Shown: positions 1,799 through 60,996 of the stretch, piece after piece
Numbering within the stretch: the stretch's first letter is position 1
Layout: the number at the start of each line of letters is the position of its first letter
Virus record (IMG/VR): IMGVR_UViG_3300020380_000001
Span: 242,501 to 306,500 of that record
DNA length: 64,000 nucleotides
Strand: one strand, 5' to 3'
Translations under genes and position numbers: made by a program
The notes under the pieces: generated by a model
Databases searched by the model: none
What the model was told of the DNA's origin: nothing
What the model saw: only the letters and a program-made list of their open reading frames with translations

Positions 1799-1823
1799 AA
1801 AAAAGGGGCAGTGTGCCCCTTTC
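1799..1823 (-). terminator. intrinsic terminator after clpA
   Basis: Minus strand AAAGGGGCA-CAC-TGCCCCTTT followed by more T, right after the clpA stop. Confidence 0.85.
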
Positions 1824-1825
1824 AA

Positions 1826-4081
1826 TTATTCTGCGCTGGCTTCTTCTTGCTTGGCGCGCTGTGCTTTGCGATCTAGCGTTACGTTAACCACTAGTTCGTT
1901 ATTAGCAACTTCTAAACGTACAATGCCACCTTCAGTCAACTTACCATACAAGACTTCCTTAGCAATTGGCTTGCGGACCGCAGTCTTAAACAAGCGCTTA
2001 AGAGGACGGGCTCCGTACTTGTCGTCAATCCCGTTGTCACGCAACCAACGCGTAGCGTCAGGTGTTACGGATACTTGGATATTCTTAGTACTCAAGTCTT
2101 GATTTAACTCAGTAATGTACGTCTTGAGGATTCGGTTAATACTAACCTCGTCAAGCGGTGCAAACACATGAACATCATCAACACGGTTAATCAGTTCCGG
2201 CTTAAAGAAGCGTTTCACTTCCGCGTCAATTTCCGATGCCATGTTTGCGCTGCCAGCTGCAAAGCCTATACGACTGCCGCTCGCTTTTGCTGCGCCAGGG
2301 TTACCAGTATAAAAGATAACGGTATTGGAGAAGTCTGCGGCTACGCCTGACGACGACGTAAGTTTGCCGTGATCGTGTATCTGTAAGAATAAATCATATA
2401 CGCTTCGGTGCGCTTTTTCAGATTCATCCATCAGTATTACACAAACTGGGTTTTCAGATACTTCCGTAACCAACTTACCATTCTTATAACGACCTTCACC
2501 GTGACCCTTGTAGCCAGGAGGTGCGCCAATCAGTAACGCGTCTGAGTGCTCAGCTGAATACTCACTCATATCATAGCGCAGTAACGGCACGCCCCATTCT
2601 TCCGCAAGTACTTTCACCAAGTGTGTTTTACCAGTACCTGTGATACCAGCAATAATACCACCGTAAATAGGACCTTCGGAATTGTCAAGCCCAGCTTTGC
2701 GCGTTTCAATAGCTTCAACTACCGTGTCAATAACATCGTCGTGTCCAAACACACGATCCTTAATACGGGCAGCAAGCGTCGACATACTGTCGCTGTCGTT
2801 CGCTGTTAAGTCTTTTTCAGGAATGCCGGTAGTCAAACTTAGTGCGCGTGTGATGTTTTCATCGTTTACTTCGTCTTGTCCTTTAATCTTAGCGTTAATC
2901 ATCGCTAAATCAAGTAGGTCAAAACTTCTGTCCGGGTTGTGCTTTTGCTGCACATATTTGGTAGCCAAATCAACCAGTTTCGGTAAGTCTGCCATATTAA
3001 ACGACACGTTATGGAAGTCTTCGTACGAGAACAGGCTCTGTGCAAGTATACGCACAGTTTCATCACGCGATGGTTCAGGCACATCAACTAACGCAAAGCG
3101 GCGCACAAGTGCTCTATCACTTTCAATTTGTTCGTAATACTCAGCGTTAGTAGTAGCGCCGATTACTTTAATTTCACCGTTTGCTAGTTTAGGCTTAAGC
3201 ATGTTGCCCAAGTCAAGCGCTGAATCTTTAGTTTGTCCAGCTGACATTGCGGAGTGCATCTCGTCAATAAACAAGATAACTTTGTCCTTAGAACACAGCT
3301 CGTCAATAATTGACTTAATACGTTCTTCAGCATCACCGCGGAACTTAGTACCTGCCATCAGGGCAGCAACATCAAGTGAATAAATTTCGTAGTCTTTTAG
3401 TGAATCCGGGATTTCGCCGTCTACAATTCGTTTAGCTAGGCCTTCAACAATTGCTGTTTTACCAACACCGGCTTCACCTGTCAAAATTGCGTTTGACTTT
3501 TTGCGGCGTCCCAGTACATGTACTAGTTGATCAATAACATCGTCGCGCCCAACAAGCGGATCAATTTTCTCAGCTTGTTCGGTTAAGTTTACACAGTATG
3601 TGCCTAAAGGATCAGTTACGTTTGAACCAGTACCAGCGCCAGATTGAAGAGCAGGCTCTAGGATTTCTAAAATCTTTTCACGTGTAATGCCGTGCTTTTT
3701 AAGATATGCTGCCGAGTGCGAGCGCTCTTCGGTAACCATCATTAATACTAGCGACACAAGTGTCAAATCAGAATTGCCTGAAATTGCGTCTTGTGCTGAT
3801 GCACGACGGATAAGTTCAATTAAGCGCTTGGATTCTTTGGGTTCAATGTCAGTGCCAGTCCATGGTGAACGTAGCGACTCACTTGACAAATAAGTTTCAA
3901 CATCAGTGATAAGGCCGTTAAGCGTGCCTTTACAGCGCGTAACTAAATCAGTGAATGTTTTTTCTTGTGTAAGGGATAAGAGCAAATGCTCGGTAAGTAG
4001 GTATTCGTGATAGCGGCTAACCGCCTCGTTTGTAGCGCGTTCCATAACACGCTTGATGAACTGTAAGTCTTTATCAGCCAT
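1826..4081 (-). CDS. clpA: ATP-dependent Clp protease ATP-binding subunit ClpA
   Basis: Clp_N repeat ([13 protein letters not shown]); D1 Walker A GEAGVGKT and Walker B LFIDEMH; D2 GITGTGKT and LMDESEKAH; ClpP-docking IGF loop (SRIGF); GARPLKR sensor; 751 aa with no ClpB M-domain. Confidence 0.93.
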
Positions 4082-4106
4082 ATTTTGCTCCTTGTGTTTA
4101 AACTAT

Positions 4107-4496
4107 TTATTCACCCGATTGCGAATTATTCTGTATTTGTTGCTCATATGCTTTTATCACAGCTTGCTGGTCCTTAATATAACGTAATAAGTCAGCGGTG
4201 TTATACGACAGATTTTCATAGTCCTTTGCGCTTAACACAAAGTACGCTTGATCGTCAGTCATATTGTCAGTTAAGTCAACCATAATAGCCCGGTTGGCAA
4301 CTCTGAATTCGACTGCGGCCATATTAACTGGCTCAGGTCTGCCGAACGTGCCATATATAGGGCATATAGCGTCACTGACGTCCACAGTCTGCGTCTGTTC
4401 CTCATCCGTTAAAGTACAAGCCGGCGTCGTAAGAATAATTCCTACGGTTATACCGAGCACGATAATAGACTTCACACCGTTATTCAGTTTCTTCAT
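4107..4496 (-). CDS. o-spanin (outer-membrane lipoprotein, Rz1/PseT.2-like)
   Basis: Signal peptide with lipobox-like ILTTPA|C; C-terminal YENLSYN..DLLRYIKDQ..VI..YE; overlaps the i-spanin end. Confidence 0.75.
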   Translation of the reverse strand: MKKLNNGVKSIIVLGITVGIILTTPACTLTDEEQTQTVDVSDAICPIYGTFGRPEPVNMAAVEFRVANRAIMVDLTDNMTDDQAYFVLSAKDYENLSYNTADLLRYIKDQQAVIKAYEQQIQNNSQSGE

Positions 4497-4929
4497 CGAT
4501 TTTAGTCACTTCTTCAATGTCAGTACCCAGCTTAGCTATGGCTCGATTTACTCGAGTTTCTATTAAGCCCGGCTTTTTGCTGGCTAGATATTCAAGGTCA
4601 TGTTTGCGCAACACGTCTTTGATCTTATTCTGTTCAGCTACGTTTTCGTTATACATCTCACGTAGCTCAGAATGTTGTTTCAACAGTTGCTCAACTTTGG
4701 ATGCCTGAATCTCAAGCCGTTTGACTAAGTTTTCGTTCTTATTTGTAACATTAGTGACTTCGGTTGTCAAGGTATTAACTTCTTTTTGTAACTCAGTGTT
4801 ATCTTCAATTACAGAAGTTAAGTACGAATAGCCAAGGTACACGGCAAACAGAACACCCGCAAAGGCGGCAAGTACGGCTATTGTACCCCAAGTCTTTTTA
4901 GATCCTAATGCGGCGAGTCCTGCTAACAT
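4480..4929 (-). CDS. i-spanin (inner-membrane, Rz/PseT.3-like)
   Basis: N-terminal TM helix, long coiled coil, KKPGLIETRVN motif as in T4-type i-spanins; directly upstream of a lipoprotein gene. Confidence 0.78.
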   Translation of the reverse strand: MLAGLAALGSKKTWGTIAVLAAFAGVLFAVYLGYSYLTSVIEDNTELQKEVNTLTTEVTNVTNKNENLVKRLEIQASKVEQLLKQHSELREMYNENVAEQNKIKDVLRKHDLEYLASKKPGLIETRVNRAIAKLGTDIEEVTKIDEETE

Positions 4930-4930
4930 G

Positions 4931-5665
4931 TTATCCGTTCCTTGTTACTTTAAGACAGTGGTTGTCATCATTAACCACTAATATATGTGAATCACTAGTA
5001 CCGAATACAGAGTAACTGGCACCTAGCGAGCGCTCTAAGAATACTATATCAGTGCCGCTTGAAAACGGCGATACTTGACTATGAAAGCCTTTAAAGTCGC
5101 CTTCGTCAACAACACGATAAGAACTACCTTCCAACGAGAATGTAGACTTCTGCGTATCTGTGCGACTTGCGGCTTTAGCAAGAAACTTGGCTATTGCATC
5201 TTGTCCTTTATTGGCCAAGTACTTTTTGTGAGTCATGTACTTCTTAGGATCAAGAGGCAAGTCAGCATGCGGGCAGCCTGCGCGGTAACGCTTAACTTCA
5301 CCTGTCATATAAAACCTAAGACTCCATTTCATCTTATCAGTCATATTTTCAATGTCAGCGATCATCTCGTCAAAGTTTTTCCAAAAGTCACGATCACGTC
5401 TATATTCAACGTGCACTTTCCACATGTTGTTGGTATCGCTAAGCTCAGTGAACTCTGTATCAATCGTATCATACGGTGACATTTCAATAAACATAGCAAA
5501 GTCACGAGCGGCAGCTTCGTCTATTACATTAAACGTCACTACTACCACTTCTTCAGGTGTCCCCGACTTAGGCTTAAAGAAATCAACTAGAATGATCGGA
5601 TCAACCATGTGCTCTAGTTGATGGCGTCTAAACCTTTCGTTTAACTGTCTTTTATTACGCTTCAT
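4931..5665 (-). CDS. jumbo-phage hypothetical protein (likely start MKRNKRQLNE)
   Basis: ORF track 4931..5761; in-frame ATG at 5665 overlaps the upstream stop. Confidence 0.75.
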   Translation of the reverse strand: MKRNKRQLNERFRRHQLEHMVDPIILVDFFKPKSGTPEEVVVVTFNVIDEAAARDFAMFIEMSPYDTIDTEFTELSDTNNMWKVHVEYRRDRDFWKNFDEMIADIENMTDKMKWSLRFYMTGEVKRYRAGCPHADLPLDPKKYMTHKKYLANKGQDAIAKFLAKAASRTDTQKSTFSLEGSSYRVVDEGDFKGFHSQVSPFSSGTDIVFLERSLGASYSVFGTSDSHILVVNDDNHCLKVTRNG

Positions 5666-6200
5666 CGTCGCCTTCATCCTGGTTTGTTTCTGGGGCATCA
5701 TCTGTGTCGTCTCCACCAAATATGTCGTCACTATCGTCGATTTTCTCATCTCGATAATCAACCCCGCTTAGCGCGGTAGACAGATTCAAGTAATCAGTAA
5801 TGTTGCTTGCAATTAGACGTTTGGGGAATTTCAAATCAACTACTGAAACACGGTAAAGCTCGCTTTTAATTGGCGCGGTTGGATTATCGTCGAACTCTTC
5901 AGCAGTCGGTACGCCTGTCATATTGAAAGCTTCGTTACGCAGGGTATACTTAATACCGAACTTCTCTAAGCGCGGCAAGCCTTTTACATCAGGTGGTCTG
6001 GACTTGGGGTACATGATAGACACGTCAACCCAGTACTCTGTGATATCAGGCCCTGCTATAATTTCGCCTTCTTCCCAGTTCTCATATGCATAGACGCCGG
6101 TCTCGCCAAGGATACTCTCGCACTCTAGCAAGTAATCCATAGCAGTAATGTCGCCCATAATATACTGGTAGTTTTGTTGTAATGAATCAAATTCTATCAT
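5655..6200 (-). CDS. jumbo-phage hypothetical protein, acidic C-terminus
   Basis: 181-aa ORF, first gene after a CTAAATA late motif, divergent from phoH. Confidence 0.8.
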   Translation of the reverse strand: MIEFDSLQQNYQYIMGDITAMDYLLECESILGETGVYAYENWEEGEIIAGPDITEYWVDVSIMYPKSRPPDVKGLPRLEKFGIKYTLRNEAFNMTGVPTAEEFDDNPTAPIKSELYRVSVVDLKFPKRLIASNITDYLNLSTALSGVDYRDEKIDDSDDIFGGDDTDDAPETNQDEGDDEA

Positions 6201-6225
6201 TATATCGCCTGTTTAGTCTTTACCA

Positions 6226-6232
6226 TATTTAG
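6226..6232 (-). promoter_or_regulatory. late promoter motif CTAAATA (hyp-hyp-spanins-clpA unit)
   Basis: TATTTAG on + strand, 26 nt upstream of ATG 6200; same motif recurs before structural genes. Confidence 0.7.
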
Positions 6233-6281
6233 TACTTGGGCAATTGTAATGAAAGATTAATCTACAAATTGAATTCTGGCC

Positions 6282-6309
6282 GTAAATACTTTTGAACACT
6301 ACGGTGTTC
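6282..6309 (+). promoter_or_regulatory. late-type motif GTAAATA followed by a cUACGg hairpin, upstream of phoH
   Basis: GTAAATA at 6282-6288; GAACAC-TACG-GTGTTC at 6294-6309. Confidence 0.5.
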
Positions 6310-6425
6310 ACGGAACCCCGGATGATAGTAAATTCATATACTTACAATCCATGCAACACGCCAAAGACTCTTGTTACTAGAACGAAGGGTCACCACTTCT
6401 TTAACCCTAATAAAGGAACTATTTT

Positions 6426-7181
6426 ATGGCAAAACAGGCTAAGTACGACCAGAATTCAACCAAGCACGGTAAACATAACCAAAAAGCAACTGTTTACGAT
6501 ATAAACTCACTTACTAAGAAGAGCCCGCCGTCTACTAAAGACGTGCGCCCGATTCCTAGAAACGTTGCTCAGGAAGAATACGTACAATACCTCAATAACG
6601 AAAGCGTTCGTTTAGTTTTCGGCACAGGGCCTGCAGGTACCGGTAAAACACTACTGGCTACACTGAAGGCAATTCAACTATTTTTAGAAGGCCATGTTAG
6701 TAAAATTATCATTACTCGTCCCGCAGTAGCAGTAGACGGAGAATCGCACGGATTTCTACCCGGTGACATATTCGCTAAGCTAGAGCCATGGACAAAACCT
6801 ATCCTGGATGTATTTTTAAAGTTCTTTTCACATTCCCAGATAGCAGATATGATCGACACCGATATGTTAGAAATTTGCCCGCTTGGTTTCATGCGCGGCA
6901 GAACATTCGATAATGCGGTGCTTTTACTTGACGAAGCACAAAACTCAACTGACGTACAGATGAAAATGTTCTTAACCCGTATAGGCACCGGCACGCGTGC
7001 ATTTATTACTGGTGACTTAGAACAAAGTGACCGAGAAAAAGGCATCAACGGCTTAGAGGACTTTGCCCGTCGAGCTAATGACCGTGCGCCGGACAGTATC
7101 AAGTTCGTTAATTTCCAACGCAAAGATGTGGAGCGTGATGCGATTGTAGAGACTGTATTGGCACTTTACGAAGACGAATAA
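6426..7181 (+). CDS. phoH: PhoH-family ATPase
   Basis: GPAGTGKT, RPAV, GFLPG, FMRGRTF, LLDEAQN, TRIG, GDLEQSD motifs; SD AAGGA. Confidence 0.95.
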   Translation: MAKQAKYDQNSTKHGKHNQKATVYDINSLTKKSPPSTKDVRPIPRNVAQEEYVQYLNNESVRLVFGTGPAGTGKTLLATLKAIQLFLEGHVSKIIITRPAVAVDGESHGFLPGDIFAKLEPWTKPILDVFLKFFSHSQIADMIDTDMLEICPLGFMRGRTFDNAVLLLDEAQNSTDVQMKMFLTRIGTGTRAFITGDLEQSDREKGINGLEDFARRANDRAPDSIKFVNFQRKDVERDAIVETVLALYEDE

Positions 7182-7190
7182 GGTGATATG

Positions 7191-7217
7191 AAAAAGCCGC
7201 TTAAACGCGGCTTTTTT
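7191..7217. terminator. bidirectional intrinsic terminator
   Basis: AAAAAGCCGC-TTAAAC-GCGGCTTTTTT between convergent genes. Confidence 0.9.
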
Positions 7218-7231
7218 GTCTTTGGATTTTA

Positions 7232-7828
7232 TTATGCTGCGTCTACTGTCTCAATCACATCAGACCAGCTATTAACAACCGGAAACTTGTCTACTTCTAC
7301 GCCGCTGTTATACTCTTGGTAAAAGTTTAAAACTTTTAAACCATACTCGTGCGCTGCTAGTGCATGTTTTAGGTGATCTTCTACGTAAAACAACCCGGTG
7401 TCTTTATAATGATCAAACGCTTCTTCTTTGTGGTGGTGAATGTCCACAGCCCAAAGCTTGTCAAAATCAAAAGCGGCTGCACCAAATACCGCAGTAAGGT
7501 TATCGATACGATGTTGACGTGTTTCAGGCGATGTACCCATTAACGTAATAGGCACAAGCGTATAGCCGCGTTTTACTAACTCGCGGACACCTTCTACAGC
7601 GTCCAAATGCGGTTTTAGTTGTGCGAACTTATCACTGCCGTTAAACTCTTTAATGAGCGCTATGGCGTCCTGAATAGTATCTACACCTTCGAAACGTTCG
7701 TTCACGTTATAAAGGTGATCAGTATTTGGGATGGGCGTGTAGCCTTTTTCAACCATCCATTCTGTAAAGCCGCCAAACCAGTCAAGTAGGCATCCATCAA
7801 CATCTGTTAAAAATAGTTTTTTACTCAT
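7232..7828 (-). CDS. HAD-superfamily 5'(3')-deoxyribonucleotidase-like phosphatase (T4 30.2-like)
   Basis: N-terminal DxD motif FLTDVDGCLLDW; YVEDH motif IV; ends V.SW. Confidence 0.85.
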   Translation of the reverse strand: MSKKLFLTDVDGCLLDWFGGFTEWMVEKGYTPIPNTDHLYNVNERFEGVDTIQDAIALIKEFNGSDKFAQLKPHLDAVEGVRELVKRGYTLVPITLMGTSPETRQHRIDNLTAVFGAAAFDFDKLWAVDIHHHKEEAFDHYKDTGLFYVEDHLKHALAAHEYGLKVLNFYQEYNSGVEVDKFPVVNSWSDVIETVDAA

Positions 7829-8726
7829 CTGAGATTCTCTCTCTTATTATTGTTGTCATTAAGTAATCAACAGCTTCGTCGCTAAAGGCCGATTTAAGAC
7901 GCGAATGTTGGCGAACCTTAATTGGGTCTGAAGTTTTAAGTCTGTTGTTGAGGTGGCCTTCGTATAACACGCCGTCCATATCCAGGCCTAAGATATGCAA
8001 ACGTGATCCGGGGTTGTGTTCCAGTATTACTGACGCGAACGCTCGTTCAGCTGGGATTTCAGTAGTGCGCTTGATGCCGTGAGTCAAGTATTTCACAACA
8101 CGCTCAATACGCGATGTATCTGTCACATACATGTTACCTTTGTTGAGTATCTGACCAGGCATCATATTAGTGTTGATCCACGATACGGCGTCGACAGCCA
8201 AGCTTAAGGCAGCAATCGCAGGGTCATAACTCATTGACATCATGTCTTTTACCTTAAGCGACATTCTAGCCGTATAAGGCACGTTGCCGCAGTTATTGTA
8301 AAAGTTTGTCTCAAAGTCACCAACCACGCCCGGGTTCAACTCTCGGTATACTTCGTCGTTAAAAGCACGAACCTCATCCAAGTACCCAACAAGGTTATAC
8401 ATTTTGTGCGTATTATCCATTTTACTGGAAGCCACATTACTGGCTGGACCAAGTCGTCTTCCTGTCGACACAAATAGCGAATTTATAGGCATCATCGGGG
8501 TAGTTCGTAGCGCGAATATTTCGGGCTCGAGGCTGTTCCATTTGCCGACAGCGATTCTACTAGACACCATACCGTACAGATCCTTGTACGATGTATAAAA
8601 GGGACGTCTGGGCATTGCATAAATGACAGATCCATCTTTGCGCTCCAAGCCATACATTACCCGCGGGCAATTCTTAGTTGACATGAAATGCATGTGATCC
8701 GGTACACTCATAAAGATGCCCAACAT
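7821..8726 (-). CDS. hypothetical protein (301 aa)
   Basis: Long ORF abutting the clamp loader and overlapping the HAD gene. Confidence 0.8.
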   Translation of the reverse strand: MLGIFMSVPDHMHFMSTKNCPRVMYGLERKDGSVIYAMPRRPFYTSYKDLYGMVSSRIAVGKWNSLEPEIFALRTTPMMPINSLFVSTGRRLGPASNVASSKMDNTHKMYNLVGYLDEVRAFNDEVYRELNPGVVGDFETNFYNNCGNVPYTARMSLKVKDMMSMSYDPAIAALSLAVDAVSWINTNMMPGQILNKGNMYVTDTSRIERVVKYLTHGIKRTTEIPAERAFASVILEHNPGSRLHILGLDMDGVLYEGHLNNRLKTSDPIKVRQHSRLKSAFSDEAVDYLMTTIIRERISDE

Positions 8727-8727
8727 A

Positions 8728-9666
8728 TTACGCGCCTTCTACTGCGAGTTCTAACTCAACCAAAGTTGCTGCTAGATTAAGTTCAGGGTCAGCACATAGC
8801 GGCGCCTTAGCCATACCGTTGCGTAGTGCAACAACACAGTTTCTTTCAATATTAGGATCACCGTTAGACCAGAAGTTGATGTTGTTATACAAAAACGTCC
8901 AGATCTCATCGTACTCGTTAGGTTGTGCCTTAGCGCACATAAGTTTACGGCCTTCCACATATTGCTTTTCACGGAAGTACGCCACAGCGTGCACGCGCCA
9001 GTCTTCTGTATCGCCACCTTTAGATGACGGTGATTCAAGTTTGCCGTTAATTGTGTTCTGCTGCAATAAGTTCAAACACTTACGCAAGTCAGGATAGGTT
9101 GCGTCAATAACTTCCCCTAGTGCTTCAGGGTCAATATCAACTTGCTCTTCAAGCAGTACGCGCACCGCACGTTCTTCAAACTGCGGCTTATCTGGTTTTG
9201 AGATTTCGTACTCTTGCAAACGTGACTTAAGCGCGGGAATAATACGATTCGGGTAGTTACACGTCATTACAAAACGACACTGATGCGCATAAGTTTCCAT
9301 TAAGTTACGAAGCGTAGCTTGTGCCTCAGGACTTAAGTGATCAGCCTCGTCAAGAAGAATATAACTGAACGCACTCATAAAAGGCATGTTAGACGCAAAG
9401 CCTTCAACAGTTGTTCTGATATACTCAACACCATTTTTCAATGACGCGTTGATAATCTTGATGTTGGACTTGTCGACCTCAAGCATGTTAAACAACACCT
9501 TAGCCAGTGTCGTTTTACCAGTGCCCGGGCCGCCGTGGAATAACAAGTGCGGAATAGTTTTTTCTTGCACCCATTGATTGATTTTGTTTTTAAGACTTTC
9601 GTCTTTAAGAACATATCCGTCAAGAGTGGCAGGACGGTACTTTTCAACCCAAAGATCAGTTGCCAT
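8728..9666 (-). CDS. sliding-clamp loader large subunit (T4 gp44 / RFC small subunit-like)
   Basis: LWVEKYRP, HLLFHGGPGTGKTT, INAS, LLDEAD, TCNYP.RII..L.SR. Confidence 0.93.
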   Translation of the reverse strand: MATDLWVEKYRPATLDGYVLKDESLKNKINQWVQEKTIPHLLFHGGPGTGKTTLAKVLFNMLEVDKSNIKIINASLKNGVEYIRTTVEGFASNMPFMSAFSYILLDEADHLSPEAQATLRNLMETYAHQCRFVMTCNYPNRIIPALKSRLQEYEISKPDKPQFEERAVRVLLEEQVDIDPEALGEVIDATYPDLRKCLNLLQQNTINGKLESPSSKGGDTEDWRVHAVAYFREKQYVEGRKLMCAKAQPNEYDEIWTFLYNNINFWSNGDPNIERNCVVALRNGMAKAPLCADPELNLAATLVELELAVEGA

Positions 9667-9695
9667 GTGTTTGTGTTCCTCTAAGGAAAGGGGAG

Positions 9696-9956
9696 TTACT
9701 CCCCTACGTTTCTGTTATTGTACTCGTGAAGTTGTGATATTGCCCTTACCACAACGCGTGAAATTTCAATATCAACTCCGTATGACGCAATGCGCGGTAC
9801 GAGTTCGCCGGCTTCGCCGCTGTCGCTAGGAACTATGTCCACTAACTGAATAAACATCTCTGTTTCTTCTTCAGATAGTGACTCCCAGCTAGGCTCTGCG
9901 AACGCTATGCCGTATACGATACGGGCTATTTCGTTATTACTCAGGGGTGCTTTCAA
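9696..9956 (-). CDS. hypothetical protein (86 aa, probable TTG start)
   Basis: 3' part of ORF 9696..10061; GGGGAG SD about 6 nt upstream of an in-frame TTG at 9956 inside the groES 3' end. Confidence 0.55.
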   Translation of the reverse strand: MKAPLSNNEIARIVYGIAFAEPSWESLSEEETEMFIQLVDIVPSDSGEAGELVPRIASYGVDIEISRVVVRAISQLHEYNNRNVGE

Positions 9957-10308
9957 AGAACTCTCCCCATGATTCGTCGCCTGGATAAGTGTCTGAGACG
10001 GCGATGACTGACTTCGGATACTCGAGCATATAGACTCGTAAAGGTTCTTTAGTTTCTTCATCTATGATTTCCGGGATTTTACGTGAGCGCGTCCAGCGCC
10101 CGTGCTCTACTAGAACCCAATTGCCTGGTTCTATATCAACAACGTCGTCACCAACAGCGAAGACGTGCGCCCAACGATTACGTACACCGTGCGCTTTACC
10201 ATCATCGTTAGCGATAATGATACTACCCACCTTACGTTCGCCGTGGACTATTTTGTCTACTAGCACTCTACCGGGTAGAGGTTTTACTATGGGATTCAAA
10301 GTTTTCAT
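9937..10308 (-). CDS. groES: co-chaperonin GroES-like protein
   Basis: KPL.GRVLV, mobile loop KVGSIIIA, V.AVG, I.PG.WVL. Confidence 0.8.
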   Translation of the reverse strand: MKTLNPIVKPLPGRVLVDKIVHGERKVGSIIIANDDGKAHGVRNRWAHVFAVGDDVVDIEPGNWVLVEHGRWTRSRKIPEIIDEETKEPLRVYMLEYPKSVIAVSDTYPGDESWGEFFESTPE

Positions 10309-10339
10309 ATTTTTATTCTTATTATTACTTTGTCTGTCT

Positions 10340-10367
10340 ATTTTACACTAAATTCATTTTTTATCAA
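10340..10367 (-). promoter_or_regulatory. sigma70-like promoter for the groES-clamp loader operon
   Basis: TTGATA-16 nt-TAAAAT followed by an AAT-rich leader. Confidence 0.45.
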
Positions 10368-10381
10368 GATGAATTTGCGTT

Positions 10382-11203
10382 TTACCAAACTTCAGTGTAT
10401 GCGTGCCCTTTGATATTGTGGGTTTTGATATGCGATCGACGCGTAGAAACAAGCGTACTCAACGGAACTTTGTCCCTTGCTACTATTTCATAGGTTAAGT
10501 GCCCAGCTAATAACAAGGAACCCAATTCCTCACGCGTCATGTAATCGTCAGTTTCTTTGGCTTTTGCAGCACACAACACAAAGTCAGACTCACAATCATA
10601 CACCAACTCATGGTAATCAAGGCTATGTTCAAATACAGATATTTTAAGAATATCGTCTGTGTTCTCCTTGAACTCAACAACGATATTTTTATCACTGGCG
10701 CCTATGTTCCCGACTGTGTCGAAATACATTGTGTGACTATGCAACACACACAAGATACACTGGTTGTCCGAGTAAAGTGCCGCGGTGGGTATATCAAAGG
10801 TCATAGGATTCTCGTAAACCAAAGTCTTGCCATGGCTTTTTAAGATAAAATGACCCTGGGAATATATATCACGCGGCCTTCCGCTTGCCGCTTCCTCAGT
10901 ATAAAGTATTTGACTTAATGTCTGCATCGAAGCTCGATCAGTTGCCTTGGCCATAGCCTTTGTCAGGTCCCAAATCTGTCCGAGTACTTTATCTACCATG
11001 TCGTTTTCGAAGACATGATTATCGTAACGCACATGCCCGTAAAATTCAGAAAGTCGAAATTCACATGATCTAAATCCAGGCAAGTCTTGATAGCCATTAT
11101 CATCTTGTTCAACTCTAATACGAACCGTCAAGTCAACAGGATTTTTTATAGCCCTAAGCCGTAATGTTCCTATTTCTAGTGTATTTGTGTTAGCGGTTGC
11201 CAT
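10382..11203 (-). CDS. hypothetical protein (273 aa)
   Basis: Long ORF with AAGGA SD. Confidence 0.8.
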   Translation of the reverse strand: MATANTNTLEIGTLRLRAIKNPVDLTVRIRVEQDDNGYQDLPGFRSCEFRLSEFYGHVRYDNHVFENDMVDKVLGQIWDLTKAMAKATDRASMQTLSQILYTEEAASGRPRDIYSQGHFILKSHGKTLVYENPMTFDIPTAALYSDNQCILCVLHSHTMYFDTVGNIGASDKNIVVEFKENTDDILKISVFEHSLDYHELVYDCESDFVLCAAKAKETDDYMTREELGSLLLAGHLTYEIVARDKVPLSTLVSTRRSHIKTHNIKGHAYTEVW

Positions 11204-11212
11204 TTGTGTTCC

Positions 11213-11671
11213 TTATACTTCTCTGTATATTACACCGGTCTCGTAAAACATTTCAAGTGAAGCGTCATACCCGTCAGTGTGCCTCGCAGCGTACCAGTCA
11301 GATCCTACGCCACCGCTCTTGTCTACAATCACCTCGGCTATCTGTACTTGAATGATAGCACGGGCACAATCAGCGCACGGTGTGTGGGTGACGTAAATTC
11401 GACAACCAACCAGCGACTGGCCTTGGTTTTGGTAAATAGCGTTCCGCTCCGCGTGCTCAAAGTAAGATCGTTTAGCCGGGCGCTCGTGTCGAGATGGCAC
11501 ATCATCATTTACGCCCCTAGGAAAGCCATTGTAACCAGCAGAAACCATCGTATTCCTGCTGTCTACAATTACACTACCAACTTGGGTACTCTCGTCTTTG
11601 GACCATGTGGCTATTAGACGAGCAACGTCGAGGAAACGTTGGTCCCATTTCTCTTGTCTAGTAATGGTCAT
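11213..11671 (-). CDS. dCMP deaminase
   Basis: SKD.STQVG, GYNGFPRG, HAERNA, PCADC zinc motifs. Confidence 0.93.
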   Translation of the reverse strand: MTITRQEKWDQRFLDVARLIATWSKDESTQVGSVIVDSRNTMVSAGYNGFPRGVNDDVPSRHERPAKRSYFEHAERNAIYQNQGQSLVGCRIYVTHTPCADCARAIIQVQIAEVIVDKSGGVGSDWYAARHTDGYDASLEMFYETGVIYREV

Positions 11672-12030
11672 TCCCCTGCGATCTCGTCAGGTGCTTCGTC
11701 GCCAGAATCAGCTTTTGGTTTTGATTTAGACCGTGCTCTCGGCGCTGGTTTCTCTTTCTCTTTCTCTTCGACTTTGGTCTCTTCAACCTCTGTCTTAATT
11801 TCAGCTTCGTCCGCATCTGGCTTAATGCTTACGTTTTTAACTGAGTTAGGCGATCGCGAGTAATACTCTTCCGACACTTGCTTGGCTGTTTTAATAATCT
11901 TGCCTTGGCTGTCGATAATATCGCCACGTGCGTTCATAGATGCATTGCCTACGGCAGGTACAGTGTCATTACTGCGCATTAGTTGACCGAAATCAATATC
12001 ACGGCCGCGTTTGGTTTTAACTTTCTTCAT
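11668..12030 (-). CDS. jumbo-phage hypothetical protein
   Basis: GRDIDF..L...PAVGNASMNARGD motif; charged tail; coupled to neighbours. Confidence 0.75.
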   Translation of the reverse strand: MKKVKTKRGRDIDFGQLMRSNDTVPAVGNASMNARGDIIDSQGKIIKTAKQVSEEYYSRSPNSVKNVSIKPDADEAEIKTEVEETKVEEKEKEKPAPRARSKSKPKADSGDEAPDEIAGE

Positions 12031-12577
12031 CGTTGTTCCCTAAGTCTTTTGCAAATTCTGCGAAATCTAGTTCGTAAAGCATCGAATCCACATCATGTAG
12101 GCCTAACTTATACAGCAAGTAAGAACTAACACTTGATCCACGCCCTACTCCCCACGTTACGTTTGAAACTTCACATACATAAAGTACGTAAAGCAAATAT
12201 TTAAGAAGCGGTATTGAGTCGCACTCAAGGAAATAGTCATATTCCATTTTTATGCGTGCTTTTTCTTCGTCAGTTGTGCACAACCCGTATAAGTAATCAA
12301 GTAAATCAAGGTCAGCAAATTCAGGCGGAGTAAGCCATTCGGACTTACATCTTTCAAGGAAGGGTAGTGTTTTTTCGTAGTCGTAATCAGGCGTGGTTAT
12401 TGCCATCTTGTCAAACAAGTCGGCAGCTTCATGATAGCGTTTGACTTCGTCTTCGTCGCTTACTACTACAACGTCAGTCGGTTTGACGCCTTCTAGAATC
12501 GCGTTCACTACGTCTGCTCGGTCGAATATTGGCCGAGCGAGAGCGTCTAGCTTTCTTACTTTTGCGTTCATCTGCAC
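12017..12577 (-). CDS. DNA polymerase III alpha (DnaE)-like fragment
   Basis: RI..E...F...YLL....WGVGRGSSVSSYLLY.LGLHDVD...YEL.F..F matches the DnaE GRGS region; only 186 aa. Confidence 0.8.
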   Translation of the reverse strand: MQMNAKVRKLDALARPIFDRADVVNAILEGVKPTDVVVVSDEDEVKRYHEAADLFDKMAITTPDYDYEKTLPFLERCKSEWLTPPEFADLDLLDYLYGLCTTDEEKARIKMEYDYFLECDSIPLLKYLLYVLYVCEVSNVTWGVGRGSSVSSYLLYKLGLHDVDSMLYELDFAEFAKDLGNNDEES

Positions 12578-12767
12578 CGTTCATCTTATCTTCGATTTCT
12601 TTCTGTTGTTTTTCTTCCAGATCAGAAATCAGTACGTCAAGCTGGGCTAACATTTGATGATAGCCCTTACCTATCGCGTTGGCACGGCGCTGTCTCAAAT
12701 GCATGAGTTTTTGCTGAGTATTCAGCTTATCCACATCTAGTTGATTTTCATCGCCGTTACCGTTCAT
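12474..12767 (-). CDS. hypothetical protein with basic C-terminus
   Basis: Starts 3 nt after the MazG stop; 3' end overlaps the next gene by about 100 nt. Confidence 0.55.
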   Translation of the reverse strand: MNGNGDENQLDVDKLNTQQKLMHLRQRRANAIGKGYHQMLAQLDVLISDLEEKQQKEIEDKMNGADERKSKKARRSRSANIRPSRRSERDSRRRQTD

Positions 12768-12770
12768 TGA

Positions 12771-13220
12771 TTAGATATCCGTCTTAGTACGCTTTTCAGA
12801 ACGTTCCACGTCAAACCCTGTCGGGAATCGTGCTTCTAGTTTTGCGCGGTTAAGTTCCATGAGTTCACTAGGTTTCATACCCAGTGCCATCACAGCTTGC
12901 ACCCAGTAGAAGATAACATCACCGAGTTCTTTCTTAAGGTGATCAGTGGTTTTCTCGTCAAGTTCTTTGCCTTGGAATAGCACTTTCTTCATGATGTCAA
13001 GTGTTTCACCTGATTCTGATGCAAGTCCGATGACACCTGTCATTAGACGAGAAAACGATTCGTGCTCTTGTAAAGAGATTAAACGATGGATAACTTTGAG
13101 AAGTTCATCGCTGTCTTTTGTAGGCAGTGATGACACCGAGTCTACAAATCTTGAGTACTCGTGTATATCAAAGTTATCCGGCGTGCTTAGGTCAGTTTGT
13201 TTAATAGGAGTTGATGACAT
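12771..13220 (-). CDS. MazG-like NTP pyrophosphohydrolase
   Basis: GLASESGE..D..KK, KELGDV.FY, N..KL..RFP motifs. Confidence 0.9.
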   Translation of the reverse strand: MSSTPIKQTDLSTPDNFDIHEYSRFVDSVSSLPTKDSDELLKVIHRLISLQEHESFSRLMTGVIGLASESGETLDIMKKVLFQGKELDEKTTDHLKKELGDVIFYWVQAVMALGMKPSELMELNRAKLEARFPTGFDVERSEKRTKTDI

Positions 13221-13278
13221 CTTTATTATTATCCTTAGTGTGTCTTTGTTGCGTATATTTAATATTATACTGACTTAT

Positions 13279-13307
13279 ATGATACAAAATTGTATCACTT
13301 TTGTCAA
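13279..13307 (-). promoter_or_regulatory. sigma70-like promoter with an operator-like palindrome in the spacer
   Basis: TTGACA (13302-13307)-17 nt-TATCAT; perfect inverted repeat TGATACAA-AA-TTGTATCA at 13280-13297. Confidence 0.55.
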
Positions 13308-13738
13308 TATTCGTTGTGTCTTTCGCTTCTTATAAACTGGAAAAGCATATCTAATGTCTTTTCTACTTTTTGCTCTACTCGAGCAATTTTCACATCGTTC
13401 GCATCATGTGAACGTTGAATTTCTTGACGCAATTGTGCCTGATAGTCATTGTTGTTTTCTCTAGTTTGATCAACACGGCCGTTAAGCGCGTCAAGTCTAG
13501 ATACTAACTCATTATAATTGTTAACAGATCCCGTTTCTAATTTAGATAGGCGCTCTTTTAACTCTGTTAATGTACTATCGACATCTTTCTTATACTGCTC
13601 ATTGAAATCGGATTTGCTCTGCAAGCTCTTTTCTTTGGACTGGTGTTTAACCAGCGTAATTATTCCAATTACTACAGCTATAACCGAGCCAACTATTGCG
13701 ATGCCTGCGCCGAGCGTTATAGTTGTTGGTTCTGCCAT
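13304..13738 (-). CDS. single-pass membrane protein with coiled-coil C-terminus
   Basis: Hydrophobic LGAGIAIVGSVIAVVIGIITLV, then heptad-rich region; SD GAGGT. Confidence 0.8.
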   Translation of the reverse strand: MAEPTTITLGAGIAIVGSVIAVVIGIITLVKHQSKEKSLQSKSDFNEQYKKDVDSTLTELKERLSKLETGSVNNYNELVSRLDALNGRVDQTRENNNDYQAQLRQEIQRSHDANDVKIARVEQKVEKTLDMLFQFIRSERHNEY

Positions 13739-13745
13739 GACTACC

Positions 13746-14180
13746 TCACATAGACTTAATTTTTGTTAACTCGTCCAACATTAGGTCGAGTTGATTTTTG
13801 CGTGATGTTCTTGCTTTTTGGAGGTATGTATGTGTTTTGTCATATGCCCACTGTACCAATTCCTTGGCGTATTTGGTGCATAACAAGTCAACGGGTAATA
13901 AACAATTTTTACTACGAGTCACTTTCAGTTCATCATTACTGATATATGCCGCCGGCACTCCCTTACTGTTAATCAGTGTCGCGTAATTACTAGTTACCAT
14001 ATCTTGATCGATTAAGATAACCGCAGTAATAACGCCATCCGCATAACGGAGAGCACGGTCAATATCATTAAAAGATACCACCGCTATTTCAGTGACAAAC
14101 GATTCTAAATTTTGAACGACTTCTTCGTACTGAGTAACAATGATAACTTCTAATATAGGATGTTTTTCTGTAGATACCAT
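13746..14180 (-). CDS. hypothetical protein, possible degenerate receiver (CheY-like) fold
   Basis: EVIIV...VVSFNDIDRAL...AVILIDQDM pattern resembles REC beta1-beta3; acidic pocket not conserved. Confidence 0.55.
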   Translation of the reverse strand: MVSTEKHPILEVIIVTQYEEVVQNLESFVTEIAVVSFNDIDRALRYADGVITAVILIDQDMVTSNYATLINSKGVPAAYISNDELKVTRSKNCLLPVDLLCTKYAKELVQWAYDKTHTYLQKARTSRKNQLDLMLDELTKIKSM

Positions 14181-14208
14181 ACTTAGTTTACCACGTTTTG
14201 TTTAACTT

Positions 14209-14215
14209 TATTTAG
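14209..14215 (-). promoter_or_regulatory. late promoter motif CTAAATA
   Basis: 29 nt upstream of ATG 14180, just downstream of the clpP terminator. Confidence 0.65.
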
Positions 14216-14224
14216 CTAAAGACG

Positions 14225-14255
14225 AAGAAGCCGCATACGGTGCGGCTTCTTTTTT
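14225..14255. terminator. intrinsic terminator after clpP
   Basis: AAGAAGCCGCA-TACGG-TGCGGCTTCTT hairpin with T-rich flanks. Confidence 0.8.
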
Positions 14256-14270
14256 AATGTTTGTGTTCAG

Positions 14271-14837
14271 CTATTTTAAGTCGTTAATAGACTTGACTAC
14301 TTCGTCTATTAAGCCATACTCTTTGGCTTCAGCTGCTGACATAAAGTTGTCACGATCAGTGTCAGCTTCAATCTTATCGAGCGGCTGTTTTGTAAAGTCC
14401 GCAAGCATTCTGTTTAGTTTATCTTTAATAGACAGAATCTCTTTAGCGTGTATCTCAAAGTCAGATGCCTGGCCTTGGAATCCGCCCAGTGGCTGGTGAA
14501 TCATTACACGGCAATTAGGCAGCGCGTAACGAACGTCGCCTGCCGCTAATAAGAACGAACCCATTGAACAGCACTGCCCGGTACCAACAGTAATAATACG
14601 AGAGTTCACAAACTTCATCGTATCATACATTGATAATCCCGCAGTTACAGCACCGCCGGGTGAATTAACGTATACGTAAATGTCGGCTTCCATCTTGGAT
14701 TCAAGATAAAGGATCTGCGCATTTACAGACTCAGCCATGTGATCATTTACAGGACCGTTAATCAGTATAATGCGGTCTTCCAAAAGTCGTGAAGCCAAAT
14801 CAACTACACGGTTATTCTCTATGATCATCGGAATCAT
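14271..14837 (-). CDS. clpP: ATP-dependent Clp protease proteolytic subunit ClpP
   Basis: SRLL.DRII, YVNSPGG, catalytic Ser in CCSMGSFLL, His in MIHQP, Asp in [17 protein letters not shown]. Confidence 0.97.
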
Positions 14838-14846
14838 ATATTTTCC

Positions 14847-15623
14847 TTATTGTGGTAAAACTTTGTCAATAGTAGCTAGTAAATCCGGATCAAATGCTAG
14901 CTTGTTTTCTGGATTGAGTGAATCCATATTCTCAATACACCATAACCAGTAATCAGCCGGAACTTCTGAGAACGGTTTGCCTTTGTGTTTTCCAAAAGGC
15001 ACTGTTTGGTATATTGTCGGTTCTTGTGCGTACTGAACAACGTCAGCGAGCATATCAGGACCGGGCTCTATAATACCGCGTACGAGCATCGTTTCTACCA
15101 TGACCTCTAGTAATCTGGCAGTGAAATATGCATCGTGCGGGGCTCTGTGAAGCTGCAAATTATCTAATTCAGGGCGGTCTTCCGACAGGTCGAAGTGATA
15201 TCGCATGTCAGGCAAATTGTATGATTCCAACTCAGGGAACAACTTGCGGCCTAGACGCAGAGTACAAATAAATTGTTCTTCAGGGATATTTGCGCCATAT
15301 GCGTCTGATACAAGGAATTCATACTTTGCATTGTGCGCAACAATAAAACGATCTCTGATAGAGTCAAAAAACTCATTACGCTTGTAAATGAACTCTTCGC
15401 GCCCTGCGAGCATGCGCGGGGTAATCAAGCACACTGATTGGGTTTTAACAGGAAGGGCACCTGCTACGTTGAATAGCTCGCCTTCCATCGACCACGTATT
15501 GCCATCAAAACTAGAAGTACCAGTTTCAATAACTTCAACATCATACGGGTCTAGCCCGGTGGTCTCATAGTCTATCACGACTAATGATTTGTAGAAATTC
15601 TTAACAAATAAATTCATTGACAT
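14847..15623 (-). CDS. DEDDh 3'-5' exonuclease, exodeoxyribonuclease X-like
   Basis: IDYETTG, VAHNAKYE, ICT, HRAPHDA; C-terminal VPFGKHKG.PFSEVP.DY..W domain. Confidence 0.88.
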   Translation of the reverse strand: MSMNLFVKNFYKSLVVIDYETTGLDPYDVEVIETGTSSFDGNTWSMEGELFNVAGALPVKTQSVCLITPRMLAGREEFIYKRNEFFDSIRDRFIVAHNAKYEFLVSDAYGANIPEEQFICTLRLGRKLFPELESYNLPDMRYHFDLSEDRPELDNLQLHRAPHDAYFTARLLEVMVETMLVRGIIEPGPDMLADVVQYAQEPTIYQTVPFGKHKGKPFSEVPADYWLWCIENMDSLNPENKLAFDPDLLATIDKVLPQ

Positions 15624-15850
15624 ATTCTCGTGTGTAGTCTGGATATATAGGACTCCGACTTGGCAGACAATGTCTCATAACTATAGCGCGGATTAAAAGG
15701 ATCTTCAACTGCGTAGTAATCAACAATTTCTTGCACTTGTTGATCAAAGCTGTCTAGTTGGGTTAAGACATGGTGGTTTACTGACCCGCGGCCGAGGTCG
15801 TCAAATACGGTTAAGTCTAAGCGATCGTCAAACTCGATATCGTCGTCCAT
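15614..15850 (-). CDS. hypothetical acidic protein (78 aa)
   Basis: First gene of the exoX-clpP unit, overlapping the exoX start. Confidence 0.65.
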   Translation of the reverse strand: MDDDIEFDDRLDLTVFDDLGRGSVNHHVLTQLDSFDQQVQEIVDYYAVEDPFNPRYSYETLSAKSESYISRLHTRICQ

Positions 15851-15885
15851 AATATATACTCTTTGTGTTTGTTATTATATCTAGC

Positions 15886-15927
15886 GCACATAATGATTAT
15901 GTGTGAATTTTTTTAATCATTATGTGC
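15886..15927. promoter_or_regulatory. nested inverted repeats (operator-like) upstream of the clpP operon
   Basis: GCACATAATGATTA-14 nt-TAATCATTATGTGC plus internal CACATAAT-G-ATTATGTG. Confidence 0.6.
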
Positions 15928-15974
15928 AACATACACAAAAAGTGGTCAACGGTCAAACTGTTTTTAAAAACTTT

Positions 15975-16322
15975 TTAAAGTTTTTTGCCTAGTGCTTCAT
16001 TCTCCAAGCGCACTGCGCCAATCTCTTTCAAGACACTAAACGGATTAATACTGGATTCGATCATATCCATAATGCATTCTACTTCGCTTGCCAAATCATT
16101 TACTGGAAAATCTCGATGACTTTCGTCCCAGTAAGCGTATATGTGTTCGGGTTTCATATCCCTGAGTATTTCACTAAACTGGTCGTCTTGCATGGCAATG
16201 TTAAAGTTATTATACACGCCCGCGTCTGCTATAAGGCGGTTAGGTTCGTTTTCTTCGTGGCGTAACGAAATCAAAAGTACAGGTATATCTAGCGCTGATT
16301 TCAAGGTTGTTATTGTTGTCAT
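15975..16322 (-). CDS. hypothetical protein (115 aa)
   Basis: ORF with AGGA SD. Confidence 0.7.
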   Translation of the reverse strand: MTTITTLKSALDIPVLLISLRHEENEPNRLIADAGVYNNFNIAMQDDQFSEILRDMKPEHIYAYWDESHRDFPVNDLASEVECIMDMIESSINPFSVLKEIGAVRLENEALGKKL

Positions 16323-16330
16323 TCTGTATC

Positions 16331-16669
16331 CTAGCTAATATTACTGACGTCAACACCAATGGTAACTACAGTGTTGGTCTTCTCCGCAATTGCGGTATTC
16401 ATCGCGTCTATGACTTTTTCCATGTCTGTCTCAGCCGTGCCATAATATGCGTTATAAACTGAAAAATTCCAACCGTTGAGGTCTTGACCTGCAAGGGCTA
16501 TTGCTTCATTGAAAAGCTTCGGTGTGATATCCTTATAAGACTTAATTCGGTCAACTTTAAGATATTTAATGAGCCTTTCCATAGGTAGTATTAGAAACGT
16601 GCCAATTTCTCTGCCGGCGTCATCGCGTCCGTGGACTAGGCGACCAATGCTTTGTATGCTTGAGCTCAT
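16331..16669 (-). CDS. hypothetical protein (likely start MSSSIQ)
   Basis: ORF 16331..16684; GAGGAG SD precedes ATG at 16669; late-type GTAAATA at 16696-16702. Confidence 0.7.
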   Translation of the reverse strand: MSSSIQSIGRLVHGRDDAGREIGTFLILPMERLIKYLKVDRIKSYKDITPKLFNEAIALAGQDLNGWNFSVYNAYYGTAETDMEKVIDAMNTAIAEKTNTVVTIGVDVSNIS

Positions 16670-16712
16670 ATAACTTCTCCTCATTATACAATAAGTATTT
16701 ACGCCACAGATG

Positions 16713-16741
16713 AAAAAGCCAGCTAGTAAACTAACCGGCTT
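16713..16741 (-). terminator. intrinsic terminator of the clpS unit
   Basis: Minus strand AAGCCGGTTAG-TTTA-CTAGCTGGCTT followed by TTT (G-U pairs in stem). Confidence 0.7.
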
Positions 16742-16787
16742 CGCCTTAGTATTTTACACATGTTGACCCCAGTTTAGGGAGCCTGTA

Positions 16788-16910
16788 TCAAACAGCCAGA
16801 ACGGCAAGTACAATAACAGTCGTCACGACTAGTAAAGTACCGTTCAATACAGCTTCTTCCCAACGTGTTACCTGTGAAAAATTAAACTTATTCACAAGAT
16901 TTTTAAGCAT
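16788..16910 (-). CDS. 40-aa small membrane protein translationally coupled to clpS
   Basis: Not in the ORF track. TAATG overlap with the clpS stop; MLKNLVNKFNFSQVTRWEEAVLNGTLLVVTTVIVLAVLAV*. Confidence 0.6.
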   Translation of the reverse strand: MLKNLVNKFNFSQVTRWEEAVLNGTLLVVTTVIVLAVLAV

Positions 16911-17221
16911 TATTCTTCCTCAATAGATACCTTTAATTTTGCCCCATTGAGTTTGTTAGCACTGTCAACTTCATTTACTTTAGTCTCAGCGATCTCGTAG
17001 GGGTAAGAGCCCACAACGCCGCGTTCACCGTTGTGCACAGTAAACATAAAGTTTATAGCTTTTTCTTGGGAATAGCCGAAAACGTTAACTAAGATGAATA
17101 TGACATAGTCCATATGCGTTACTTCGTCATTATGCATGACAACTACCACATCTTTAGGAATCTCAAAATCTTCGTTAGTGTCGATATCGGTTTTTTGAAT
17201 AGTATCCGTTTGTTGAGCCAT
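16910..17221 (-). CDS. clpS: ATP-dependent Clp protease adaptor ClpS
   Basis: VVMHNDEVTHMDYVI.IL..VF, A..FM..VH..G..VVG.YPYEIAETKV, L...IE; SD GAGGT. Confidence 0.93.
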   Translation of the reverse strand: MAQQTDTIQKTDIDTNEDFEIPKDVVVVMHNDEVTHMDYVIFILVNVFGYSQEKAINFMFTVHNGERGVVGSYPYEIAETKVNEVDSANKLNGAKLKVSIEEE

Positions 17222-17269: not shown

Positions 17270-17328
17270 TAGAGCGTGATATTTTCATATCACGCTCTAA
17301 CTATACTAAATTCACCAAGCATTGTCTA
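17270..17328 (-). promoter_or_regulatory. sigma70 promoter of clpS with a 30-bp palindrome over the predicted start site
   Basis: TAGACA-17 nt-TATAGT, then TAGAGCGTGATAT-GAAA-ATATCACGCTCTA (17270-17299). Confidence 0.6.
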
Positions 17329-60978: not shown

Positions 60979-60996
60979 CCAGCTCTAGGAGTTACT

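Follow-up and report, generated by a model that had tools for sequence, protein, structure and literature searches.

Several large phages are known to encode the components of the ClpA-ClpP-ClpS (ClpAPS) protease, and such sets are widespread among them. The genome paper of Agrobacterium phage Atu_ph07 lists ClpA, ClpP and ClpS together with ClpX and ClpB (Attai et al. 2018, PMC6102473), and a comparison of 224 jumbo phages notes ClpP, ClpS, ClpA and ClpX, and proposes that phage ClpS feeds the ClpAP of the host (Iyer et al. 2021, PMC7824862). In deposited genomes, ClpS, ClpP and ClpA are annotated in Pseudomonas phage PA5oct and ten close relatives (11 records), spread over 21 kb in PA5oct; this group corresponds to the genus Wroclawvirus of the Arenbergviridae, and includes Paride, Callisto and MIJ3. 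Sinorhizobium phage Phosso has all three genes, far apart, and in Atu_ph07 they are also present and dispersed. Here we describe the clp genes of a stretch of 64,000 nucleotides (the window, i.e. the whole stretch that was analysed), which forms the last 64 kb of the 306.5-kb IMG/VR contig IMGVR_UViG_3300020380_000001. The trio in the window is a divergent marine example of an already annotated and published jumbo-phage gene set. Its only unusual features are a ClpP without propeptide and with an axial loop that is four residues shorter, and a GYKG loop in the D2 ring of ClpA. The initial annotation stated that trivially widespread co-occurrence in related phages would lower the novelty of the set; co-occurrence is found in the PA5oct group, Phosso and Atu_ph07, and the novelty is low.

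From conserved residues, predicted folds, gene order and family trees, we consider it likely that the window carries a vertically inherited phage Clp set, which is predicted to give ClpAPS-type proteolysis during infection. For ClpA and ClpS, vertical inheritance is supported by the sequences; the support for ClpP comes from synteny.

Conserved and divergent features of the Clp proteins

The three open reading frames (ORFs) could be confirmed at exactly the positions given below, all on the minus strand and with zero internal stop codons. The genes and their diagnostic sites are:

1826..4081, minus strand: clpA-like gene, 751 aa, with N-domain and D1 and D2 AAA+ rings (Pfam, NCBIfam, alignment to E. 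coli, motifs, tree)
2261..2269, minus strand: IGF tripeptide of the ClpP-docking loop in D2 of ClpA (aa 605-607; translation, aligned to E. coli IGL 617-619)
3632..4081, minus strand: N-domain of ClpA (aa 1-150), the expected ClpS docking domain (Clp_N match, structure model and Foldseek)
14271..14837, minus strand: clpP gene, 188 aa, without propeptide and with the axial loop 4 residues shorter (PF00574, NF001368, triad)
14565..14567, minus strand: codon of the catalytic Ser91 of ClpP (translation CCSMG)
16910..17221, minus strand: clpS gene, 103 aa, with N-terminal extension and core domain (PF02617, structure model)
17111..17131, minus strand: N-degron pocket motif NDEVTHM of ClpS, corresponding to E. 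coli N34-M40 (translation, alignment)

ClpA matches the Pfam families PF07724 (AAA_2, 5e-38), PF00004 (AAA, 1.4e-23), PF10431 (ClpB_D2-small), PF17871 (AAA_lid_9) and, at residues 18-65, Clp_N (1.7e-07), and its top NCBIfam model is TIGR02639 ClpA. In a phmmer comparison the protein is collinear with E. coli ClpA in one stretch (residues 18-734, 480 bits), while models of ClpB and ClpC match in two pieces only, and the M-domain, whose absence sets ClpA apart from ClpB and ClpC, is missing. Walker A and B motifs are kept in both rings, as are the Arg fingers, sensor-2 and the aromatic pore-1 loops, which read KFR in D1 and GYKG in D2 (aa 523-526). The N-domain was modelled by AlphaFold2 (AF2) with a mean confidence (pLDDT) of 88, and its best Foldseek match is 1r6o_B (TM-score 0.88), the E. 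coli ClpA N-domain from a crystal with ClpS. By these motifs, ClpA is an intact double-ring AAA+ unfoldase and a predicted partner of ClpP.

ClpP matches PF00574 (CLP_protease) at 4.5e-72 (242 bits) and passes the NCBIfam subfamily model NF001368 (261.5 bits, cutoff 249). The catalytic triad is intact (S91/H114/D163), and the column of S91 is invariant in the alignment. Among the listed positions of the pocket in which the IGF loop docks, four are shared with E. coli (Y60, Y62, F82 and L114) and four are substituted (I90V, M92T, F112Y and L189V). The protein begins where mature E. coli ClpP does and is thus without a propeptide. Four residues are absent at the tip of the axial hairpin (aa 1-20 region), with the conserved start of the loop kept, and two more are absent in a later loop at about aa 100. 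Only this phage has the hairpin deletion among 116 top database matches; the most closely related phage ClpP in the family tree (P0129, discussed below) has the full loop. Axial loops of ClpP gate the pore and become ordered on ATPase binding (PMC9035409), and for this reason the deletion could alter gating or the choice of partner, which is speculation. The sequence is 60-64% identical to gammaproteobacterial ClpP, and only 41-48% to other jumbo-phage ClpPs.

ClpS matches PF02617 at 1.6e-25 (89 bits); like those of ClpA and ClpP, this E-value lies far outside what chance would give. Its pocket residues N31, D32, E33, T35, M37, M59 and H63 correspond to N34, D35, D36, T38, M40, M62 and H66 of E. 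coli, with Asp to Glu at E33 as the single change in the listed positions. In E. coli ClpS, D35, D36 and H66 contact the degron (PMC9810338), and Met40 serves as gatekeeper against beta-branched residues (bioRxiv 10.1101/2024.06.12.598358). Two acidic residues of ClpS stabilise ClpA binding (bioRxiv 10.1101/2024.06.12.598358); the ClpA-docking residues E79, E82 and K84 of E. coli are kept as E76, E79 and K81. The N-terminal extension, which in E. coli ClpS enters the ClpA pore (PMC9663308), is about 21 residues long, ahead of Pro22, and residues 1-16 are disordered in the AF2 model. This model (pLDDT 82.6) superposes on Caulobacter and E. coli ClpS, with a TM-score of 0.95 and a root-mean-square deviation of 0.8 A to 3dnj. 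The closest relatives of ClpS are at most 45% identical (exhaustive search of 1.84 billion cluster representatives), and a word-indexed protein search with ClpS found nothing beyond ClpS itself.

Compared with the ClpAPS system of E. coli, the window has the same three components with the same domain architecture and functional residues, and the predicted folds of ClpS and of the ClpA N-domain superpose on their E. coli counterparts. The identities are about 35% for ClpA, 29% for ClpS and 55% for ClpP. Differences are that the genes are unlinked, that ClpP is without propeptide and has the shorter axial loop, and that the pore loops read KFR and GYKG; also, unlike in the E. coli pathway, the genes of the window showed neither an Aat nor a Bpt transferase. 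On the whole, the features called by the initial annotation could be substantiated by profile matches, by alignment to E. coli and by translation: both AAA rings, Clp_N and the IGF loop in clpA, the intact Ser-His-Asp triad in clpP, and the N-D-x-x-T-x-M motif and pocket His (H63, E. coli His66) in clpS. Its description of the genes as phage-borne, unlinked and complete also stands, the last at motif level.

Phage context, synteny and family trees

The window comes from an uncultured jumbo myophage of marine origin, of whose genome it forms the end; over 20.3 kb, its nucleotide identity to the IMG/VR contig is 100%. Its phage genes include those for a DnaQ-type exonuclease, MazG, PhoH and a clamp loader, and those for a baseplate hub, a gp25-like wedge protein and a further baseplate wedge protein (phrog_10646, 1003 bits). 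The isolates nearest by the baseplate protein are the PA5oct group (37%), SCTP-2 (34%), Phosso (33%) and Atu_ph07 (32%), followed by Rak2-like phages; on these sequences, the phage is a distant relative of Pseudomonas phage PA5oct, Salicola phage SCTP-2, Agrobacterium phage Atu_ph07 and Sinorhizobium phage Phosso. A megablast search of the clp regions against deposited phages gave zero matches, and the phage is therefore not a deposited isolate. A strain of about 93% identity is present in many Tara Oceans assemblies, on contigs of up to 519.5 kb. Near-identical proteins (P0001, P0121, P0122) are filed at NCBI under a Sphingobium sp. metagenome-assembled genome (MAG). Since the phage occurs in so many Tara Oceans assemblies, this bin probably contains a mis-binned giant phage.

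The region of 15 kb from ClpS to ClpA is collinear with positions 172.6-195.8 kb of PA5oct, with 14 ORFs in the same order and orientation. The PA5oct orthologues include the three Clp proteins, the exonuclease, MazG, a dCMP deaminase, a clamp loader, two structural proteins and the PhoH that is encoded on the opposite strand. All three clp genes of PA5oct thus occupy positions orthologous to those in the window, on one strand and in the same order, and the IGF tripeptide is kept. The common order is ClpS, exonuclease-ClpP, MazG, PhoH on the other strand, two structural genes and then ClpA; the window shows this dispersed arrangement to be ancestral to the lineage that its phage has in common with PA5oct. 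Identity is only 37-42%, and the PA5oct region also has ClpX, FtsH, Hsp20, ribosomal protein S21 and DnaJ. The ClpP of PA5oct has diverged much further, having insertions and changes in its pocket residues, whereas that of the window is bacterial-like with a truncated axial loop. Metagenomic relatives give a similar picture: contig L186 has the order Hsp20-ClpS-three ORFs-exonuclease-ClpP-MazG, so that the exonuclease-clpP pairing is common to the window, PA5oct and L186, and in contig L017 two spanin-like ORFs are followed by ClpA, as in the window. Atu_ph07 and Phosso are, like the window phage, jumbo myophages and belong to the same broad lineage, and they too have the three clp genes in dispersed positions; they differ in also having ClpX, ClpB and DnaJ, and in a ClpA that falls outside the clade of PA5oct and the window.

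In the ClpA family tree, which stems from a quick search and has the window ClpA on a long branch, this protein pairs with that of L017 (support 99) within a starred clade of nine rows that also holds PA5oct and metagenomic sequences. Seven bacterially named ClpAs (alpha-, gamma- and deltaproteobacteria and Myxococcota) sit in a separate clade of ten with 100% support. The clade of the window also includes a sequence from a Hermodarchaeia-labelled archaeal MAG, which lies on a 2.1-kb contig and is probably a mis-binned phage fragment. The ClpS tree is a polytomy (103-column alignment, window ClpS on a long branch); the ClpS neighbours nearest in sequence with readable context are phage contigs. 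In the ClpP tree, the sister of the window ClpP is P0129 from L186 (99/95), a phage protein of the same module, and both lie in a polytomy of proteobacterial sequences. The approximately unbiased test does not reject one common clade for all phage ClpPs in the tree (p = 0.26), so that the ClpP sequence alone is compatible with one ancient phage acquisition or with a separate capture. The phylogenies called for by the initial annotation thus place ClpA in a phage clade, apart from the bacterially named one, and leave ClpS and ClpP in polytomies, the latter with a phage sister; host synteny was not found, as no tig-clpP-clpX or clpS-clpA operon context surrounds the clp genes of the window. The collinearity with PA5oct over 14 genes, the phage clade of ClpA and the lack of any ClpS relative above 45% identity argue for an old arrangement and not for a recent capture. 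In this way, the long-term domestication proposed in that annotation is upheld for ClpA and ClpS; for ClpP it is upheld by synteny, while the sequence alone is compatible with either history.

For the organisation of transcription, the following neighbouring genes and signals are relevant:

1801..1823, minus strand: hairpin and T-run directly 3' of the clpA stop
4107..4929, minus strand: pair of small spanin-like ORFs immediately 5' of clpA, with a 25-bp gap to it (phrog_812, phrog_739)
6426..7181, plus strand: phoH-like gene, dividing the clpP block from the clpA block (phrog_170, 1.6e-68)
14224..14252, either strand: hairpin just 3' of the clpP stop with a 13-bp GC-rich stem, terminator-like on both strands
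14847..15623, minus strand: gene of a DnaQ/RNase T-type exonuclease, the end of which is 9 bp from the start of clpP (phrog_192)
17270..17328, minus strand: promoter-like TAGACA-17-TATAGT hexamers followed by a hairpin with a 13-bp stem, in the 221-bp gap upstream of clpS (consensus matches only)

Both clpP and clpA lie inside longer minus-strand gene strings, and the exonuclease gene and clpP are probably co-transcribed. ClpP and ClpA can be assigned to different transcription units because of the plus-strand phoH between them and the hairpin after clpP. The distance from clpS to clpA is 12.8 kb, with an opposite-strand gene between, which departs from the bacterial clpS-clpA operon. The 225-bp gap downstream of clpS holds only a weak terminator-like structure. 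Terminator-like hairpins are enriched in the window (32, compared to 16.2 +/- 4.4 in shuffles), whereas promoter-like matches barely exceed shuffles (51 versus 39.9 +/- 6.3) and, being so close to the shuffle level, were not used to define transcription units. Judged from these signals, the three clp genes are in at least two units. Of the three units assumed in the initial annotation, the split between ClpP and ClpA is retained, while a separate third unit is not established and the count is two or three.

At least 522 stretches of IMG/VR contain relatives of ClpS, and at least 576 contain relatives of ClpA. The 80 best ClpS loci are all without ClpA within 10 kb, and the 80 best ClpA loci are all without ClpS within 3 kb. 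In phages, clpS and clpA are thus unlinked as a rule, and the window phage is no exception. In a ClpX scan of IMG/VR, the contigs of the window were not among the best 80 matches. A seemingly conserved spacing of ClpS and ClpP in other IMG/VR loci (L029, L042-L045, L057) was dropped, as it involves a different ClpP-family protein that is only 22% identical.

Possible roles during infection

The proposed mechanism is drawn from the conserved residues and modelled folds. During infection, ClpA hexamers would dock through their IGF loops on ClpP tetradecamers, and ClpS would attach to the N-domain of ClpA and deliver proteins that begin with Leu, Phe, Tyr or Trp, a specificity suggested by the retained gatekeeper Met of ClpS. 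In this manner the phage would gain extra, or its own, capacity for ClpAPS-type proteolysis. If it is true that phage ClpAPS degrades host defence or regulatory proteins via N-degrons, this would represent a new layer of host takeover. The function is better addressed in cultured relatives, i.e. PA5oct or Paride, which infect Pseudomonas aeruginosa, and Atu_ph07 of Agrobacterium.

Several observations weigh against the proposed mechanism. ClpA scores below the NCBIfam equivalog cutoffs (TIGR02639, 686 versus 993 bits; NF008263, 533 versus 1350), as does ClpS (61.5 versus 149), so that both have to be regarded as divergent members, and ClpA cannot count as a close orthologue of the bacterial protein. 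Of 45 ClpA sequences compared, only that of the window has GYKG in the D2 pore loop; the other 44, from phages and bacteria, have GYVG. The deletion of four residues from the axial loop of ClpP could weaken or alter the coupling to the ATPase. In the wider phage group ClpA may also have roles that do not depend on ClpP, as the IGF tripeptide is degenerate in Rak2-like relatives and in Vibrio phage 2.275.O. Finally, no experimental study of any phage ClpAPS was found in the searched literature.

Two other explanations deny that the genes form a phage ClpAPS set at all, and we regard both as very improbable. One holds that the clp genes are bacterial DNA, through contamination, a mis-assembled MAG or a very recent capture from a host. 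The Sphingobium label on near-identical NCBI proteins and the resemblance of ClpP to gammaproteobacterial ClpP would fit this, and some "phage" records with clp genes are really bacterial contigs; however, the genes are embedded in phage structural and replication genes and collinear with PA5oct, outside any tig-clpP-clpX or clpS-clpA operon, ClpA and ClpS are without a close bacterial relative, and the sister of ClpP, P0129, belongs to the same phage module. The other takes the ClpP homologue for a prohead (head maturation) protease instead of a partner of ClpA, in line with the RefSeq label "head maturation protease" on the PA5oct and Atu_ph07 orthologues, and with the fact that prohead proteases with a ClpP fold are common in phages. 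With the model of true ClpP, however, the protein reaches 261 bits, compared to 88 bits (below the cutoff of 120) with that of ClpP-related head maturation proteases. It is 55-64% identical to cellular ClpP, and its gene follows a DnaQ-type exonuclease gene among genes of nucleotide metabolism, not beside portal or capsid genes. By sequence, it is a true ClpP (S14 serine peptidase) rather than a prohead protease.

The remaining explanations accept the set, but differ in its use. A possible though doubtful one is that the phage proteins act mainly in mixed complexes with Clp partners of the host and redirect the host machinery, with phage ClpS on host ClpA, and phage ClpP with host ClpX or ClpA. 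The bacterial-like ClpP (60-64% identity) and the acidic docking residues kept in ClpS make such complexes plausible; half of the listed docking-pocket positions of ClpP are identical to E. coli, ClpS retains the counterparts of E79/E82/K84, delivery by phage ClpS to host ClpAP is what Iyer et al. (2021, PMC7824862) proposed, and several jumbo phages have just one or two of the three genes. Set against this are the retention of all three parts intact, with IGF preserved, over a long evolutionary span, the identity of ClpA and ClpS to any bacterial homologue of only about 35-45%, and the shortened axial loop of ClpP, unlike that of any host ClpP seen. We think it rather unlikely that ClpA works mainly as a ClpP-independent unfoldase or chaperone for large virion proteins or replication complexes, with ClpP and ClpS serving general proteostasis. 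Its gene adjoins structural genes, and DnaJ adjoins in relatives; the Rak2-like and Vibrio phage ClpAs that were compared have a degenerate IGF, and both published discussions favour roles in assembly or as a chaperone (PMC7824862, PMC6102473). For the window phage this fits less well, because IGF is conserved there and in the nearest clade, ClpP is co-inherited, and the fully conserved degron pocket of ClpS is hard to explain without N-degron recognition. Still more doubtful is a closed, host-independent ClpAPS, close to the self-sufficient and possibly host-orthogonal machine of the initial annotation, in which the altered ClpP gate and the GYKG loop would make host ClpX and ClpA incompatible, and which would destroy a defined set of host proteins, or of cleaved phage proteins, bearing N-degrons. 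The sequences do not support orthogonality to the host: given the resemblance of ClpP to gammaproteobacterial ClpP and the docking residues kept in ClpP and ClpS, cross-talk with ClpA, ClpX and ClpP of the host is at least as likely. We therefore favour vertically inherited ClpAPS-type proteolysis in the general form described above.

Among related phages, homologous two-ring ATPases are encoded near structural genes in Vibrio phage 2.275.O and in the Rak2-like group (Asteriusvirus, Serratia phage BF, Xanthomonas phage XaC1). Their N-domains are more divergent and their ClpP-docking tripeptide is degenerate (IGM, VGM, IGV or VGF), whereas phages known to encode their own ClpP keep the IGF of ClpA.

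Further observations on the window and related phages

The degenerate tripeptides IGV, IGM, VGF and VGM were read in L007-L010, which represent Vibrio phage 2.275.O, Escherichia phage ph0011, XaC1 and BF. In Phosso (L006, 2328-2846), a peptide deformylase gene lies between those of DnaJ and ClpA, i.e. an enzyme that processes N-termini beside an N-degron unfoldase. In related phages (L014, L016, L001, L015, L019, L186), clpS is found beside IF-3, ribosomal protein S21 and Hsp20; these genes are not directly upstream of clpS in the window. Several records named as phage are pieces of bacterial chromosomes with tig-clpP-clpX or clpS-clpA operons (L182 and L185 among them), for example "Acinetobacter phage MD-2021a" and UNVERIFIED Listeria, Enterococcus and Staphylococcus "phage" contigs; such mislabelled pieces inflate counts of phage Clp genes.

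Within the window, which has no tRNA genes, the gene right after clpA (1314-1691, minus strand) encodes a protein with a cREC_REC (cyclic-phosphate processing receiver) domain (PF20274, 65.8 bits). A GNAT acetyltransferase gene (20535-20996, plus strand) lies a few kb from clpS and is kept in the related contig L186 (2542-3015); a link to N-terminal modification would be pure speculation. A 481-aa protein (22525-23970, minus strand) matching an HNH endonuclease PHROG (phrog_1314, 2.5e-89) is encoded amid AAA-type ATPase genes and may be a mobile endonuclease. A single ORF of 3504 aa (38888-49402, minus strand) adjoins the baseplate wedge gene, with ORFs of 1437, 1261 and 1310 aa nearby, all of which presumably encode giant virion or fibre proteins. 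At 59956-62993 (plus strand), the genes of a Metallophos and then of an AAA_23 protein look like a nuclease pair of the SbcD/SbcC type (T4 gp47/gp46-like).

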